Notes under the pieces: generated by a model
The model's input: the letters and a program-made list of their open reading frames with translations, nothing else
What the model was told of the DNA's origin: nothing
Databases searched by the model: none
Shown: positions 27,255 through 34,696 of the stretch, in pieces
How the letters are laid out: the number at the start of each line of letters is the position of its first letter
Position numbering within the stretch: the first letter of the stretch is position 1
Program-made: the position numbers and the translations under genes
Source: Perkinsus chesapeaki ATCC PRA-425
Taxonomy: Eukaryota > Protista > Perkinsozoa
DNA: 34,696 bases
Direction of reading: 5' to 3'
Assembly: GCA_013115145.1 (NCBI GenBank)
Contig: JAAPAO010000376.1
Location: 1-34,696, forward strand

Positions 27255-28561
27255 ATGCCATTCTCAAGCAAAGTATTCAGGAATTTAAAAGACTCTGTAT
27301 GATTACCGTTTAACCGTAAATGGTTATTATTGTCTTTTTAGATTGTCGGAGTGAAGGAGCAAGATGAAGATCCTCTCAAGACCACCCGTCTCGCTATCGA
27401 AGCCTATAGCAAGGACTCCAAGGTGAGGCTTGCAAGCCCTCGCTCTATATCCCTAATGTTTGTTCTTCTTCAGGCCCTCTGTCAGACTTTGCAAGATTTC
27501 GCAAAGGCAAATGACGAGCTTGATGGGGTTAGAGGGGAAGTGGTGAACACAGCAAAGGCGTTCCTGTTGCCGATGGACCAGCAGGGTGGGCTTCAAGTGG
27601 CCTCTGATCCCGAGGTAGGTGGAGAAGCAGCAGTCTAGTGAGATAGGGCAGGATGTTGTTTTCAGTTGACGAAGGTTGGTAATGTGTTCTCGGCTCAAAT
27701 AGAGAATATGAGTCGATCTAAGACGGAGACTAGGAAACTCCTTGATGATGCTATAAGCGAGGCGTCGGCAATGGAGAGGAGGTTGGCTGATATAGACACA
27801 GCATTTGGGGAGAGAGATAAGGCTGCTGAGTTGGTAGCACATTACAAGGAGAAGATGCAGTCGCTTAATGAGGAGCATTTGAGCAAGCCTAAGAAGGATA
27901 TGGATGATAGAGTCAAGAGGGTAATAGGGGGAGGAGGAGGAGGGGTTCAGTTGTTGTTGTTGTCTTTCAGAATCTCGTTAAGCAACAGAATGCAGTTGAG
28001 GCGTACAAACGTGTGGATAACCAAGTCAGAGCGGATGCCAACCAAGTGCTGGAGGGCCGTCAGACTAGCTTCGCCAAGATACTCGAGAAGGTAGGTGGCT
28101 GACCGCCGCCGCCGCCGCAGGAGGAGGTGTGAGGAGATGGAGGTATGTGTTGTTAGATGTGCACGTATCTGGCAAAGAACGGCAAGACACAAGGTGAAGC
28201 TGTACCGGCATTCGAGGAGCAGATACCAGCAATGATTAGAGAGAGTGAGGCTAATTTGGAGAGGACCAGAGCCGCAAGGGAAGCTGCAAAGGCCGCTGCA
28301 TTGGCAAGGCCAACTAAGAGCAGCACCTCGACGCTTGTACAGCAGCAGCATACTGACCCGAAACCCGAGACACCGAAGATGGAGGATCAAACATCGACTG
28401 CCGTGAACACTCCTACTGCAAAGGAAGGGGATGATGGAGAGAAGAAGGTTGATGAGCATCAGCAAAAGGAGGCACCAGAAGCAGCTGAGGAGGGGGCCAA
28501 GGAGGAGGCAACCCCGGACCAGTCACCTATGAGATCAGCCGACTCACTTGATAAGGAGTAA
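27255..28561 (+). CDS. N-BAR-like protein, paralog A
   Basis: MPFSSKVFRNLKDS|IVGVKEQDEDPLKTTRLAIEAYSKDSK|ALCQTLQDF...|LTKVGNVFSAQIE...GERDKAAELVAHYKEKMQSL...KPKKDMDDRVKR|NLVKQQNAVEAYKRVD...ILEK|MCTYL...QIPAMI, then an A/E/P/T-rich tail. Confidence 0.8.
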
Positions 28562-28763
28562 TTCATTCGTTAGATACCCCAGTGCTCAGCAGCAGCACAT
28601 TCAAAACATTAAGACATTCATTCACTTACAGCCTTTTAAGGCATTGGCTACCACCGCCGCCCACTTACTGATAGAAACATTGTTTCCGTTGTGGCTGTTG
28701 CCATCCAGTATGTCGTTGAGTTGGGGAGGCACTGATGATTGCTGTTAGTTTTATATATCAATA

Positions 28764-30311
28764 ATGCCATTCTATAGCAGAACTGTTAGAGACCTCAAGG
28801 ATTCAGTAAGTCGCGGGGATGGATGGCTGGGCGGAGAGAGGAGGGCATAAGGTGCTGCAGCAGCAGCACTCACAGGCGATGTATTGAATGTTTTCATTTG
28901 ATATACATTTACTATGCATGTGCAAACTAGGCTTCAGTCGATGATGCAGAAGGAGCCCCTTGAGAGGATATTGTTATTGTGTAGATGTTTGGTGTGAAGC
29001 CAGAGAAGAGTGATCCTTTACAGAGGTCTAGAGAAGAGGTCACTGAATACCTCTCGAAGGCAAAGGTGAGAATTCCAACTCATGGGGTAATACGTTACTC
29101 ATAGCCTTGTTACTCAGGAGCTTCAAGCAACATTGTTGAACTTCCAGAAGACTGTGGATGAGATGGGGGCTATTAGGGAGGACGTCGTTAGACAGTCTCG
29201 AAACTTTTTAATGCCGCTCAGTGAGGGAGGTCAGGACTATAGTGCATCTTCGGGGGGACAGGTAGGCTAATGTGGTACCTAATAGTAGATTGTAAGGGTT
29301 TGGTCTTAGTACGCGAAGGTTGGAGAGTTGTTTGCTAATCAAATAGAGATAATGAGCACTTCGAAGGCCAACACAAGGTCCTTGTTGAATGATGCTATAG
29401 CTGATGCTGGCACACTCATAGAGAGGCTTACGGACCTGCAGACTCAGTTCAGCGAGAGGGATAGGGCTGGAGAGTCGGTCGAGCATTACAGGCAGAAGCT
29501 GTCGGATCTGAATACAGAGCAGGTTAATAAGCCTAAGAAGGATATACAGGACAGGATTAAGAGGGTAAGCAGCCTTACGGTGGCTGCAGCTGAGGGGTAG
29601 GCTGTCTGTTTTAGAATATCGTGAAGTACAATGAAGCTGTATCGAACTATCAGAGTATTGATGATGCTTGCCGATCAGCGGTGTCAGTGTTATTGGAGAG
29701 CCGCCAGGCAGACTTCTCCCAGATACTGGAGAATGTAGGAATGGAAAGGGGTGGTGTCGTTATCGGAACTGGCTACTGTACTTGAGCTCACCCTCCCGCG
29801 GACGTGTGGTATAACATCGGACAGGCTGCTGTTGATACATACGAGGTTAGTTCAAGTGGTCGTTTTGCTTCTAGTATGGCTTGTTGCCGCAAATAATGGG
29901 GAGGCTGCTGAGTAAGATAAGGCTAATCTAATTGCGTCTGCTCAGTGCAAGTAGTGTTTTTGACTTTGTTATTTTCAGATGTGCCTCTATATAGCGACCA
30001 ATGTCCAGTCCTCTACCTCTTGTATACCAGTATTTACCAAGGAAATACCAGATGCTGTGGAGCATAATAAAGCTCTTAGGGATGAACAGATTAAAGCAAG
30101 GAAGGAGGCTGCTGCTGCTGCTCCTAGCGCTGATGCTGCGGCTGGTGGTGTCTCTGATGCTACCAAGATACAGCCTCTTACTGAAGCCGCCCCTGAAGAG
30201 GTCAACGAGGCAGCGCCAGAGGTCGCAGAGAATGATACACCTAAAGGTGCTGATGGTGACGCTGATGGGAAGGTCGTCAATGGCCCTTCTGCTTCGCCAT
30301 CCACTGTGTAA
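28764..30311 (+). CDS. N-BAR-like protein, paralog B (closest to A)
   Basis: MPFYSRTVRDLKDS|MFGVKPEKSDPLQRSREEVTEYLSKAK|ELQATL...|YAKVGELFANQIE...SERDRAGESVEHYRQKLSDL...KPKKDIQDRIKR|NIVKYNEAV...ILEN|MCLYI...EIPDAV, then an Ala-rich tail. Confidence 0.8.
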
Positions 30312-30503
30312 AGACTTGAATTTTAGTAGCAGTTACTGTTGCTGTTGTGATGATGATGATTTGTTAACTTTAGCCCATTGGCATTTTTAATACACATACA
30401 TTTCTAGGGTAGTAATACAGGTAGTAACGATGTTGTTGAGTAGTAGTATATCTCAGTTTATCCCTTGTGAAGTTATTATTTAATATTTTTCATCACAACT
30501 ACT

Positions 30504-31669
30504 ATGGCAGAAAACGACATCAGCGCTACAAATGCGAAGCCTGCCGTCATGACTCGCCATGAGAGGACGGCCTCTTCATCGGTCGGCGGTGCTGCGCCAA
30601 CAGTAGCTTCGACATCGTCGTCGTCGTTGTCCAATGGCGAGGATCCTCTATCAAGTCTGCGAGCCCAGCTGCCTCAACATGAGGCTAAGGCTAGAGCTTT
30701 ATTGAGCTCATTACAGGAGATAGGGGATTATGTTAGTAAATTAGACGAGGCACAGCAGAAGACAGCAAGGCTATTCCGAACTGAACTCATGGCACCTTCA
30801 GGGCGTCCTGTCAACCACGATGTAATAACGCTCCTTGTGGGGATCGAACCTGCGTGCCTGTGAGGTAATATTTCTCTCTTTCTTCAGTACTCCCAAGCCT
30901 GCACTTTATTCGTGAACCAGTTGAATGCTATTCACGAATCTATACTGGATGCCCGATGTGAACTATCTGGAGCAGTATGCTTTGCTGAAGAGATGGTAGA
31001 TAGGAACCATGAGATACAGGGCAGACTACTGCAGCGGGACAGGACTAATGGTCAGCTTAAACGATGTATTATGAAAGTACAGGAGTTATCACAGAAAGAT
31101 ACCAAACATATGAGTAGAGATTATGACCAACAAATTGGAGAGGTAACCTAGTGCTACGAGTTGGCTGCTACCATCGGTTATCATCAGGCACTTAACAAAT
31201 ACCATAATGTTGAGCGTGAGGCCGAGACCTTGGATAAGTCGGTTACAGCCGATCTTAAGGCCCTTATTGAGCACCAGGATACCGACTATGCGAGAGTGCT
31301 GGCTCCGGTACTATTCACGAATACCTTTTACCTTACAAGGCTTCCCGTCAGTTCTCTCGGTATCTTGGTGTAGCTGCATCGACAGAGTCTAATACAGCAT
31401 ATATACTGGCTAAAAAAGTTCCAAATATGCTTCGCTCCGCCGTTCATGAAGATTTAGTGTCCGACCGAAGACCTCAGGCATTCTCAATTGATGAGGAGGA
31501 GGATGATGACGACGAGGCAGAGGAGGTATCGGCCGCTGGTGGCACTATAGATGCGTGCGTTGAGGAAACTCCGCGTGCAAGTTGCGAGGGCGCCGTACCC
31601 ACTGCTAGGCAGTCAGAGCCTCCCAAAGAGACCGCTCGACCGGCTGTACAAGGCCAGAAGGGAGCGTAG
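30504..31669 (+). CDS. BAR-like protein, paralog C (Ser/Ala-rich N-terminal extension, acidic tail)
   Basis: ...EDPLSSLRAQLPQHEAKARAL...KLDEAQQKTARLF...|YSQACTLFVNQLN...LQRDRTNGQLKRCIMKVQEL...|ALNKYHNVERE...DYARVLAP|FSRYLG...KVPNML. Confidence 0.75.
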
Positions 31670-32290
31670 AGAATCGTTCAACTTAGCTCCTGCTATCTCA
31701 GGCTGGCGCGTGCGACGTTGTCGTTGGGTGCTCTAGCATGAACGATACTGTGTGCAATTTTGTATAAGTTTTCTATACACTAAGCTCCGATTTGTATCAG
31801 CGCCATTTTTATCATTGTTGCATTGGCCACCTTCCGTTGCCACAAGAACCTGGAAAAGTGCAGGATTCCTGTCGGGAGGAGCTTGCGGCGTTATCTCCGT
31901 ATTTTCCATAACTACTGCACCACCAATACTTGTCGAGTTTTGAATACATCTCTATTGACTTTTGTTCAAGTAATCAATTGGCGGCTGGCCGCTCTTGCTT
32001 TCTGAGCATCATGAGGCTCAAGCTGATTTTTAACTCCCGACAATCTCGGGGTGTTTAAATTTCATATCTAGGATATATGCTTACATTTGGCAGTGGGATC
32101 ATTTTTAAAAGCATTTCAACTTATGTTTATCAAACGAGGCGATTGTCTTGCCGAGGCTAGCAACACAATGTCTCTTGTGGCACAAAGGCTTCGGAGCTAG
32201 TCCCGTGGCGAGTGACGTATTTTGTACCGGTAGTTGTATTTCGAATATTCTTAATAGGTTTGTTTTACCCTATTTGTTATTATTATTAAA

Positions 32291-33265
32291 ATGGATTTTG
32301 CTGAAGAAGGCGAGTGGAGCCCTATGAAGCACATCAGCGAGGAGAAGCTCGAATATTTCAGAGAGAATCTTCCCCAACGTGCGGGTGTTGCTGAAAATCT
32401 GAGAGACCAGATGGAACTGGTGAACCATTATATGCAGAAGCTGGATGAAGCTCAGAAGGATGTTGCTCGGTTGTTTGAAGAGCAACTTGTTACTGAGGAA
32501 GCTGAAGGCGAAAGCGACTACGTAAGCCTCTGTTACGCTGCGAGTTGAGGTGGTGAAGTGATGGTGTTCAGTTCCGTGATGCCTGTAGGGAGTTTTTGAC
32601 CAAGTCGGAGGCCTGGCACAACGCTGTTGAGTGCGCGCAGCCTAAAATGGATCGTGCACTTGCTAGAGCCCAAGCTGTAAGGCATAGCTCCTGCTGCTGC
32701 AACCTGAGTGTCATTTAGTAGCCGTCAGGTTGCTGGTCAATACAGACGTCTCGAAGAAGCTGACGATCTAAGTTCTCTTGATCACGTTACTGCCAACAAG
32801 CTCTATCAGTCGGTTCAGTGCCCCGGTGCGGACTACGCTAAAATACTAGCACCTGTAAGTGGTCTGATACGGCTTATTCTTGCTAGTCTATGATCGTGTT
32901 CTTGCTCTTAGTATTCTCGTTATCTCGGTTACTGCGCTCCAGGCAGCGACTGTGCCTCTGTTCTGGTTAAAACCGTCCCCCGTGAGATTCGCCGTGGTAT
33001 GAAGGACATCCCAGAGCCTGTCCTCACAGCTGAGAAGTCCACCGATCACAGTTCGTCTAGCTCTTCGTCTTCATCATCATCCAGCAGCGATGGCGAAGCC
33101 AGTGAAGGCGGTCACCATCGTAGCCGTCGTGGACTCTTTGGCCGCCGTCGTCAGGGCAGCGGCGAGTCCGGTAATGAAGAGAAGGAGCATGAAGAGGAGG
33201 AAGGCGGTGCCCATCATATGATGGTAGGAGGAACTGAGGTTACTATTGTACAGGATGGAGAGTAA
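32291..33265 (+). CDS. BAR-like protein, paralog D (internally shortened; closest to C)
   Basis: ...LPQRAGVAENL...KLDEAQKDVARLF...|FRDACREFLTK...ARAQA|VAGQYRRLEEADDLSSLDHV...DYAKILAP|YSRYLG...TVPREI, then poly-Ser, RSRRGLFGRRR and acidic tail. Confidence 0.75.
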
Positions 33266-33505
33266 ATACTAGAAATCTTTTTCTTTGCTGTCGCCATTTG
33301 AAAGGCTCTTTAGCAGCCACTGCGGTGGTGTGCGTTATTACAGATGAGTGTTTAATCGACTTGCCGTTTTCGGCAAGTGCGTGCCTTCCTTTAGCAGGCT
33401 GTTGTTGTGTTGTCCTCCATTGGTTGGCTAGTGCTTGCTTGTTCGTTGAATTATCGGAGATATGGGAAGTTTCCGTATTCGGTCAGGTTTTCTATTGTTA
33501 TTTAA

Positions 33506-34673
33506 ATGGTTGTCTTTTCTAGCAAACACTGGAGGAATCTTACCAACACGGTAGTAGCGGGTGGTTGGGTAACAGCGGCGCATTTAGTGGAGTTTGCCGT
33601 GGTGTCGTGGACTCTCTCACCCATTAGACTTGGCTTAGACTTTGTAATGGTGCACAGTGGAATAAGTCAGGTCATGGGGGTACAGGCCATCACTTCTGAT
33701 CCGTTGGAAAGCAGGAGGAAGCAGCTGGCGGACTACACAGGACGCGTTCAAGTAGACCTAAGCGACAGCGATGGGTCTGGTGGGGGTACCGTTTCTTGGT
33801 TAGGCTCTTCACCAGCATATAGTTCGATTGCTCTCCATCACAGATCAGCTCATTCAGAGCCACGATGATTTAATTAAGGATATGAATCTTATAATGGGAT
33901 GTTCCTCTACAGAGGATGTTACAAAGGAGCAGAAGGCTCCCAGTGATGAGGTCGGTGTTTGGGAGCTTGAAAGGGAATGGTGGGAGTATCGGCTGAAGAT
34001 GAGGAAAGGAGAAACCTTGATCTTTCAGAACGCTCGAGCAATATCCCTCTTCGAGGATCGGCTGGGCGAGTTCAATAAGATGGCGCGTGACGCGAGACCA
34101 CAATTAGAGAAAGCCAGAAATGAGGCGCAAGAATTAGTGCGGCGTACCGGTGACCTTCAAGAGAAGCTGAAGAGTCGCGACCGTGCCTACGAGGAGCTGA
34201 ATCATTATAATCAGAAGGTCACCGATCTCAAAGCAGAGATGGCCAAGAAATCAAAGCCTGATGTGAAGGAGCAAGAACGGCTGGATCGAGTAGGAAATGT
34301 CAATGATTATTGTGGAGATTCAGTCGTTGATAGAACGTTGATAAGCATCGTATAGCGCAGGAGAACTTCACCAAGTTGGACGGGGAAGTCCGAAGCGAAA
34401 TGGCGGTAGTTGTGGATAGTAAGGTGGTGGATATCGCTAGGGTGGTGGCTGAGGTAAGCCACGAAGGGAATCATTGACGTTACATTGCTGTTGTTGTATT
34501 AGTATTCTCGGTACCTTGGAACTGTGGGCTCGGCTGGAGTGAAGGATAACAACGTATTTAGGCAGGATATACCCAATATGGTCAAGGACTCGGCAGCGAA
34601 AGAGAATATTGCCGAAGGGAATGCCAATGAGGGCAATGCAGCAGCTTATCCCCACCTGCCGCCCCCTTCTTAA
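33506..34673 (+). CDS. N-BAR-like protein, paralog E
   Basis: MVVFSSKHWRNLTNT|VMGVQAITSDPLESRRKQLADYTGRVQ|ALHQHI...|NARAISLFEDRL...KSRDRAYEELNHYNQKVTDL...RLDR|NVDKHRIAQENF...VVAE|YSRYLG...QDIPNMV...PHLPPPS*. Confidence 0.78.
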
Positions 34674-34696
34674 TTATTCTACTAGCCACAGTGCAG

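Follow-up and report, generated by a model that had tools for sequence, protein, structure and literature searches.

What do the five consecutive genes at the end of a contig from the shellfish parasite Perkinsus chesapeaki encode, and how are they related to each other? The window analyzed here is an entire contig of this organism (C2811; GenBank JAAPAO010000376.1, 34,696 nucleotides (nt)), in which positions 27255–34673 are occupied by an array of five plus-strand genes, A to E. An initial annotation, made from the sequence alone, had described these genes as highly diverged paralogs of the N-BAR type. Proteins with BAR domains play central roles in endocytosis and in the shaping of organelles and, to our knowledge, are almost uncharacterized in alveolates. 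The reading that we favor, with a probability of about three in four, is that the window contains the first five genes of a diverged tandem array in which every gene encodes a stand-alone amphiphysin/Rvs/Bin3-type BAR domain with a disordered, mostly acidic tail after it. Part of this explanation is the predicted presence, in the array products, of a BAR domain of about 220–250 residues that consists of three long helices.

Gene structures, shared motifs and homology

Gene models were built from the three-frame translation, with GT-AG introns placed such that each gene stays open; the five starts proposed earlier (27255, 28764, 30504, 32291, and 33506 for A to E) turned out to be correct, and each spliced frame is open. 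Gene A (27255–28561, plus strand, as are all genes and motifs of the array) has six exons (27255–27296, 27342–27422, 27474–27614, 27666–27920, 27971–28090, and 28157–28561) and encodes 347 amino acids (aa), with a BAR-like core followed by an acidic low-complexity tail. Gene B (FOL47_006659, 28764–30311; 324 aa) also consists of six exons (28764–28805, 28985–29065, 29118–29261, 29310–29564, 29615–29734, and 29979–30311), and so does gene E (FOL47_006662, 33506–34673; 274 aa; exons 33506–33550, 33671–33751, 33804–33950, 34029–34289, 34334–34453, and 34503–34673). Four exons each are present in gene C (FOL47_006660, 30504–31669; 336 aa; 30504–30821, 30888–31142, 31188–31307, and 31352–31669) and in gene D (32291–33265; 271 aa; 32291–32521, 32572–32676, 32729–32854, and 32912–33265). 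The GC content of the window is 42–50%, and the composition is unbroken across the array.

All 21 introns of the five genes are of the GT-AG type and in phase 0, and most are 44–78 nt long, the three longer ones comprising 120, 179, and 244 nt. The exon sizes match closely: in A, B, and E, respectively, exon 1 encodes 14, 14, and 15 aa, exon 2 encodes 27 aa in each case, and exon 3 encodes 47, 48, and 49 aa; the large exon encodes 85, 85, 85, and 87 aa in A, B, C, and E, and the one that follows it encodes 40 aa in all four. In gene C, the first three exons are merged into a single 106-aa exon, so that a separate short first exon is missing, and the N-terminus is disordered and rich in serine and threonine; gene D has 35 + 42 aa where the other four have 85 + 40. 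The phase-0 introns and the matching exon sizes thus bear out the earlier proposal that the genes have intron positions in common.

The motifs on which the initial annotation relied are also present. An [ES]DPL motif is found as EDPL in A (27366–27377), SDPL in B (29009–29020), EDPL in C (30639–30650), and SDPL in E (33695–33706), and is absent in D, which has EEKL in its place. At the end of helix 2, gene A contains the motif RDK..HY..K...L (27813–27866), which recurs in the general form RD[KR]..(8)..Y..K...L in B (29457–29510), in E (34176–34229) and, in part, in C (31035–31088); in the family alignment, R50, D51, K63, and L67 are invariant across this motif. The last exon starts with MCTYL in A (28157), MCLYI in B (29979; the stretch 29979–30080 reads MCLYI...IP), FSRYLG in C (31352), and YSRYLG in D (32912) and E (34503), followed in each case by [IV]P.

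Beyond these motifs, the products align as homologs. Comparison of C with B by BLASTP yielded an alignment of 218 aa (E = 5e-16) that starts at the DPL motif and ends at the VP motif, and comparison of C with an E-like paralog yielded one of 235 residues (E = 1e-24). Exons 1, 3, and 4 of D match residues 46–96, 205–231, and 232–262 of C (E = 6e-10, 0.003, and 1e-4, respectively), with the matches colinear and the exon borders coinciding; in the same exon-level comparison, no similarity to C was detectable for exon 2 of D. Judging from these alignments, homology among the genes is far beyond chance, and we conclude that the five genes are real, homologous, and spliced as originally proposed.

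Examination of the identity matrices reveals three groups: A with B (53% identity in the 85-aa exon), E with the further paralogs F and G (about 55%), and C with D (38% in the 40-aa exon); the identity between C and all other members is 20–30%. Every exon of A to E has a one-to-one ortholog in the array locus of Perkinsus olseni (L001), with identities of 57–100%, save for exon 3 of E (43%); the A ortholog is located at L001 3039–4029, with 69–100% identity per exon, and the E orthologs are P0014 and P0004. Hence the idea of an old local expansion holds, given the orthologs in the same P. olseni array, whereas the accompanying division into two subfamilies (A/B/E and C/D) has to give way to the three groups seen in the sequences. 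Between the two species, the proportion of nonsynonymous differences (pN) is 0.09–0.17 across all five genes and that of synonymous differences (pS) is 0.69–0.83, that is, saturated (for example, 0.10 vs 0.80 in A and 0.17 vs 0.69 in D); because of this saturation, no dN/dS ratio is given for A to C. The existence of the orthologs, together with the low pN, indicates that the five genes are older than the split between P. chesapeaki and P. olseni and that all of them are under purifying selection.

The P. olseni locus shows some peculiarities of its own. Gene C is inverted there (L001 7455–8725; JABANN010000134.1), head to head with D, such that the N-terminal coding parts meet at about 8520; the protein P0011, which comes from a different P. 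olseni isolate, runs from B into C on one strand. The orientation of C in P. olseni could reflect either an inversion polymorphism or a misassembly. In the P. olseni annotation, A is merged with an upstream leucine-rich repeat gene, and F is merged with G.

Predicted fold and dimer

The AlphaFold model of B (predicted local distance difference test (pLDDT) 80, with 207 residues at 90 or above) contains helices at residues 27–72, 87–162, 166–227, and 230–261, and residues 1–21 and 270–324 are disordered. The model of C (pLDDT 78) contains helices at 50–95, 105–176, and 183–268, and residues 1–45 and 270–336 are disordered. Both models show the three long antiparallel helices in an elongated, kinked bundle that characterize BAR domains. 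In Foldseek searches against the PDB, the top 50 matches of the B and C models were all BAR, N-BAR, F-BAR, I-BAR, or BAR-like proteins (Lsp1, GMIP). An independent fold search of B with VIA-align against 48,161 chains ranked first the APPL BAR domain (Z 15.6), arfaptin (Z 15.0; 197 residues at a root mean square deviation (rmsd) of 2.4 Å), and Bin1 (Z 14.7; 200/201 residues at an rmsd of 2.2 Å), with the first 35 rows all of the BAR type except for one sperm-axoneme chain; such scores are to be read with the caveat that long helical bundles score high easily, so that helical models may reach Z of about 13–14 with unrelated chains. The C model superimposes on the N-BAR domains of BIN2 and BRAP1 with an rmsd of 3.0–3.4 Å and a TM score of 0.73–0.82. 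As modeled in silico, therefore, B and C fold as BAR domains. The suggestion that the tails are disordered and that no SH3 or other domain accompanies the core is likewise supported.

A symmetric BAR-like interface was also predicted when two copies of B (residues 1–265) were modeled together. The ipSAE score was 0.77, compared with 0.00 for the best of three controls; of 30 proteins whose structures were solved as same-chain pairs, 21 reach the mark taken to indicate a dimer, as do none of 23 solved as single chains, and the pass of B may reflect the memory of the model for solved BAR dimers. At least 75% of the contacts are shared between runs, and the pLDDT of the partner is 83. The predicted interface is symmetric (contacts 53–53 and 223–223) and comprises residues 39–97 and 201–248; it involves helix 1 and the end of helix 3, as in BAR dimers, which is to say that the prediction for B is a symmetric antiparallel dimer of the kind usual for these domains. 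Residue 215 of B, where its last exon begins, lies inside the predicted interface, and hence the two types of last-exon motif, MC.Y[LI] in A and B and [FY]SRYLG in C, D, and E, may mark two pairing classes, that is, may define the pairing partners.

Sequence evidence for a BAR domain

Taken by themselves, the sequence methods are weak, but they lead in a single direction. Exon-by-exon Pfam scans produced nothing significant. At the level of whole proteins, the best match was that of the E-like paralog P0007 to the BAR family PF03114, at 19.2 bits (E = 0.0011), below the gathering score of 28.5 bits; B, E, and their orthologs yielded weak, sub-threshold matches to BAR_3_WASP_bdg, Vps5, or BAR_4 only. 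The Pfam test that had been suggested for the BAR assignment accordingly stayed below the cut-off, all matches being sub-threshold, with BAR-clan families appearing repeatedly among them. When the family profile was compared with all PDB sequences, the best match was a BAR protein from Galdieria (3caz; E = 0.021), over the motif RD..HY..K..L...RI.RN, the best-conserved one in the family, and a phmmer search of the PDB with P0007 returned nothing significant. UniRef already labels B and its ortholog as a “BAR domain-containing protein.” In the ESM Atlas, a search by features placed B (0.94, 204 shared features) and C (0.93, 192 shared features) nearest to clusters of the Bin3 family, followed by clusters of BAR, arfaptin, and FAM92; a search by shape returned mixed helical proteins and was uninformative.

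An exhaustive search of 1.84 billion representatives with a profile of the 85-aa exon retrieved seven proteins, six of which are Perkinsus or unnamed fragments of the same family. The remaining one, P0010, is a repeat protein without a relationship to the family. No sequence-level relatives outside Perkinsus were found in this profile search or in word searches with E, B, and the family alignment. The array was not matched when all six frames of the genome were searched with PF03114. The exon with the best Pfam BAR score in the genome lies at C812:32695–32964 (L010 1501–1770; E = 6.6e-5 over 90 aa); it is unrelated to the family profile of the array and probably belongs to the canonical BAR gene of the species.

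Several observations weigh against the favored reading. No member of the family reaches the gathering score of any BAR-clan family, and C has no BAR-clan match in Pfam at all; the ease with which helical bundles attain high Z scores and the possible memory effect in the dimer prediction, both noted above, belong here as well, as do the charge of the cores, the moderate amphipathicity of the N-termini, and the structure of gene D, to which we turn below. The sub-threshold Pfam matches, the E value of only 0.021 for the PDB profile match, the restriction of sequence relatives to Perkinsus proteins, and the frequency with which Z values of about 14 are obtained between helical models and unrelated helical chains would all fit a lineage-specific antiparallel helical bundle or coiled coil that merely resembles a BAR domain in the models, with no common origin or mechanism. 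We consider such a bundle very unlikely given that four independent kinds of evidence agree, namely, the sequence profile, the top Pfam match, the language-model neighbors, and two fold searches; moreover, the best structural matches span the whole domain with an rmsd of 2.2–3.4 Å, and the predicted dimer uses the BAR interface.

N-terminal segment and charge

A short first exon of 14–15 residues that is conserved between P. chesapeaki and P. olseni (identical in A, 86% in B, and 93% in E) precedes the core of A, B, and E, and is lacking in C and D. It carries a net charge of +2 and is rich in aromatic residues, and the same type of segment is found in the paralogs F, G, and H. The initial annotation had interpreted this segment as the amphipathic H0 helix of an N-BAR domain. 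The hydrophobic moment of the first exon is 0.56–0.58 in A and B, a value reached by 3–5% of shuffled sequences, and 0.36 in E (22%); for 18-residue windows, it is 0.35–0.42, reached by 10–20% of the shuffles, and AlphaFold assigns the segment a pLDDT below 50. Thus, the conserved, cationic short exon in A, B, and E is upheld, and the clear-cut amphipathic helix is not: the segment is amphipathic to a moderate degree only. The N-BAR label, which depends on this exon, is therefore tentative. The N-terminal segments of A, B, and E, and those of F, G, and H, may insert into the membrane as a helix.

The cores carry a net charge of about −1 to −6 (about −2 in A, −4 in B, and −1 in E), and the tails are acidic; these are net charges computed per exon, which say little about the concave face. 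The only alveolate protein of similar layout to have been characterized, TgBAR2 of Toxoplasma gondii (TGME49_320760), consists of 357 aa; its BAR domain precedes a disordered region, and further domains are absent. TgBAR2 tubulates anionic liposomes, localizes to the cell periphery near the inner membrane complex, and is encoded by a single gene; an amphipathic helix is lacking, and the concave face is extremely basic (PMC11615899). The study concerned, published in 2024, was the first biochemical analysis of two Toxoplasma BAR proteins (PMC11615899). Compared by description only, TgBAR2 and the Perkinsus products are alike in combining an alveolate BAR domain with a disordered region and nothing else, and differ in that TgBAR2 is strongly basic whereas the Perkinsus cores are neutral to acidic overall, in terms of net charge.

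These features bear on the possibility that the array products have a BAR fold but do not bend membranes, serving instead as dimeric scaffolds for proteins such as small GTPases, in the manner of arfaptin, or elements of the cytoskeleton; in this case, the acidic tails would be the sites of interaction. The near-neutral to acidic cores and very acidic tails, the weak amphipathic character of the N-terminus, and the presence of arfaptin among the best structural matches would be compatible with such a role. Nevertheless, the nearest feature neighbors are of the Bin3/Rvs161 type, which act on membranes, the short first exon with its cationic and aromatic residues has been conserved both among A, B, E, F, G, and H and from one species to the other, and net charge reveals little about the concave face, so that we regard a purely protein-binding function as unlikely. 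Under the favored assignment to membrane-associated BAR domains, the products would be dimeric, crescent-shaped scaffolds that sense or impose membrane curvature.

Gene D, a shortened member

Gene D lacks about 50 residues of the 85-aa exon, the portion that makes up the turn and the distal half of helix 2, and hence cannot have a full-length arm; the RD..Y..K..L and DPL motifs are both absent, and its exon 1 has a net charge of −13. In view of this loss of part of the fold, the absent motifs, the high acidity, and the lack of a cDNA contig, one could ask whether some of the copies, D above all, are decaying duplicates without a function. This appears extremely unlikely: the frame and the splice sites of D are intact, the P. 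olseni ortholog retains the same exon sizes and thus the shortened structure, and pN is well below pS, as given above. As for expression, no cDNA contig among the three public runs that we used covers D, an absence that proves nothing.

Transcripts, deposited proteins and spliced leaders

The cDNA contigs from these three runs were placed on positions 27255–33254. A single 868-nt contig confirms introns 2–5 of A, and introns 1–4 of B are likewise confirmed by cDNA contigs; another contig spans 30470–30821, where the end of exon 1 of C continues into the first letters of exon 2. Introns 2–5 of E are confirmed by an MMETSP transcript, P0002, which was retrieved, along with the deposited FOL47_006662 and the P. 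olseni orthologs, using the open reading frame 33804–34352. The first introns of A and of E are based on homology and the P. olseni orthologs only. The comparison with RNA that had been proposed as a check on splicing thus supports most of the junctions in A and B, introns 2–5 of E, and the end of exon 1 of C, with D the gene left without a contig.

Deposited proteins P0006 (324 aa) and P0015 (336 aa) are identical to our models of B and C, respectively. The deposited model of E (P0001, 300 aa) retains an in-frame, stop-free intron of 78 nt (33951–34028), which is removed in P0002. Proteins for A or D were absent from the matches of the word searches, whether E, B, or the family alignment served as the query, and from those of the exhaustive profile search. 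The 5′ end of P0002 differs from exon 1 of E (33506–33550): the transcript begins with MRLTNT where the genome encodes ..HWRNLTNT; an alternative 5′ end, addition of a leader inside exon 1, or an assembly artefact are possible explanations.

Perkinsus mRNAs are known to undergo spliced-leader trans-splicing (PMC3101222). Two contigs, one for B and one for C, from a leader-primed marine metatranscriptome, with at least 99% match to P. chesapeaki, carry DinoSL-type letters at their 5′ ends, although the exact leader letters on them may derive from the library primer. The AG acceptor for leader addition to the B mRNA is located at 28747–28748 (plus strand), 15 nt upstream of the ATG, and the loose end of the cDNA reads TTTGGCTCA before 28747; that for the C mRNA is located at 30471–30472 (plus strand), 31 nt upstream of the ATG, with the loose end CGTAGCCATTTTGGCTC before 30470. 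Because the DinoSL-type letters directly precede 28747 and 30470, B and C are separate trans-spliced mRNAs. Thus, A, B, C, and E are transcribed, and the mRNAs of B and C bear a spliced leader.

The family beyond the window

The array was originally described as consisting of five genes; it is longer. When the genome was searched in all six frames with the profile of the 85-aa exon, two further, E-like copies were detected on contig C2865, G and F′, the latter a 98.8% identical copy that is cut by the contig end. The last 73 bases of the window (34624–34696) are 100% identical to C2865:26531–26603 (minus strand), just upstream of G, which indicates that the two contigs abut. The F′/G pair could be the product of a very recent duplication or of gene conversion, or could represent two haplotypes. 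In P. olseni, F and G directly follow E and are annotated as a single 561-aa protein with a faint BAR match.

A local profile search identified an eighth, diverged member, H, which follows G in P. chesapeaki as well as in P. olseni (P. olseni L001 15178–16340; P. chesapeaki C2865, L009 2792–2628); it starts with MPFFEKSKTLRKIKEK and contains a GDPL motif. The P. olseni annotation places H at the N-terminal end of a 940-aa gene, which additionally encodes a two-pore K+ channel (Ion_trans_2, with two TVGYG filters); this joining is either a real fusion or a merged gene model. A ninth, unlinked member is represented by five colinear exon pieces on the minus strand of C564 (about 49050–50620; L008 702–2274), which match positions 5–39, 86–136, 133–168, 174–214, and 210–244 of the family profile. 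Within the window, nothing upstream of A matched the profile in the local search. Altogether, the family consists of eight or nine genes, belongs to the genus Perkinsus, and has so far been undescribed; in the literature searched, Perkinsus is linked to BAR domains or amphiphysin in passing mentions only.

Relationship to known BAR proteins and implications

Among known proteins, the Bin3/Rvs161-type BAR-only proteins (PF03114) resemble the Perkinsus family in size (about 270–350 aa), in having a single BAR domain and no SH3, PH, or PX domain, and in the short N-terminal segment before helix 1, and they are the nearest language-model clusters for B and C. The Perkinsus sequences differ from them in falling below the Pfam cut-off, in their long, disordered acidic tails, and in copy number, with eight or nine copies, mostly in one tandem array, as opposed to one or two genes. 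The N-BAR proteins amphiphysin, Bin1, BIN2, and Rvs167 provide the best superpositions over the full domain, and the symmetric antiparallel dimer predicted for B is another point of likeness; unlike these proteins, the Perkinsus products contain no SH3 domain, their amphipathic helix H0 is putative, and C and D lack the N-terminal segment. The motif of the acidic-Asp-Pro type that follows the N-terminal segment is reminiscent of the TEDP motif of Rvs167. The Galdieria sulphuraria protein 3caz is the only PDB chain found by sequence, aligned over D..E..DHYK.K...L...RIERN..K...A..Y, and is also the top Foldseek match of B; it comes from a red alga, is a structural-genomics entry, and shares about 13–16% identity with the Perkinsus proteins.

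Given that BAR-only proteins are well known and that B already carries an automatic BAR label, we regard the family as a known kind of protein that has expanded within one lineage rather than as a new kind of system. A more far-reaching scenario, to which we attach a low probability, is that one Bin3/Rvs-like gene gave rise to eight or nine BAR proteins with two types of interface, with and without an N-terminal wedge, and including the short-armed D, and that homo- and heterodimers of differing curvature shape lineage-specific membranes. Such membranes might include, speculatively, those of the cortical alveoli, the large vacuole, the zoosporangium, and the discharge tube, and in the case of H, there might even be a fusion with a two-pore K+ channel.

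At a practical level, the analysis corrects several gene models: the retained intron in E and, in P. olseni, the fusion of A, of F with G, and of H to their neighbors. For the biology of the family, the array provides, in a shellfish parasite, a natural series of proteins with and without the N-terminal segment, with two interface motifs, and with one shortened arm, a series that would be useful for asking how the dimer specificity and curvature of BAR domains evolve; for the biology of the organism, its products are candidate markers for perkinsid membrane compartments.

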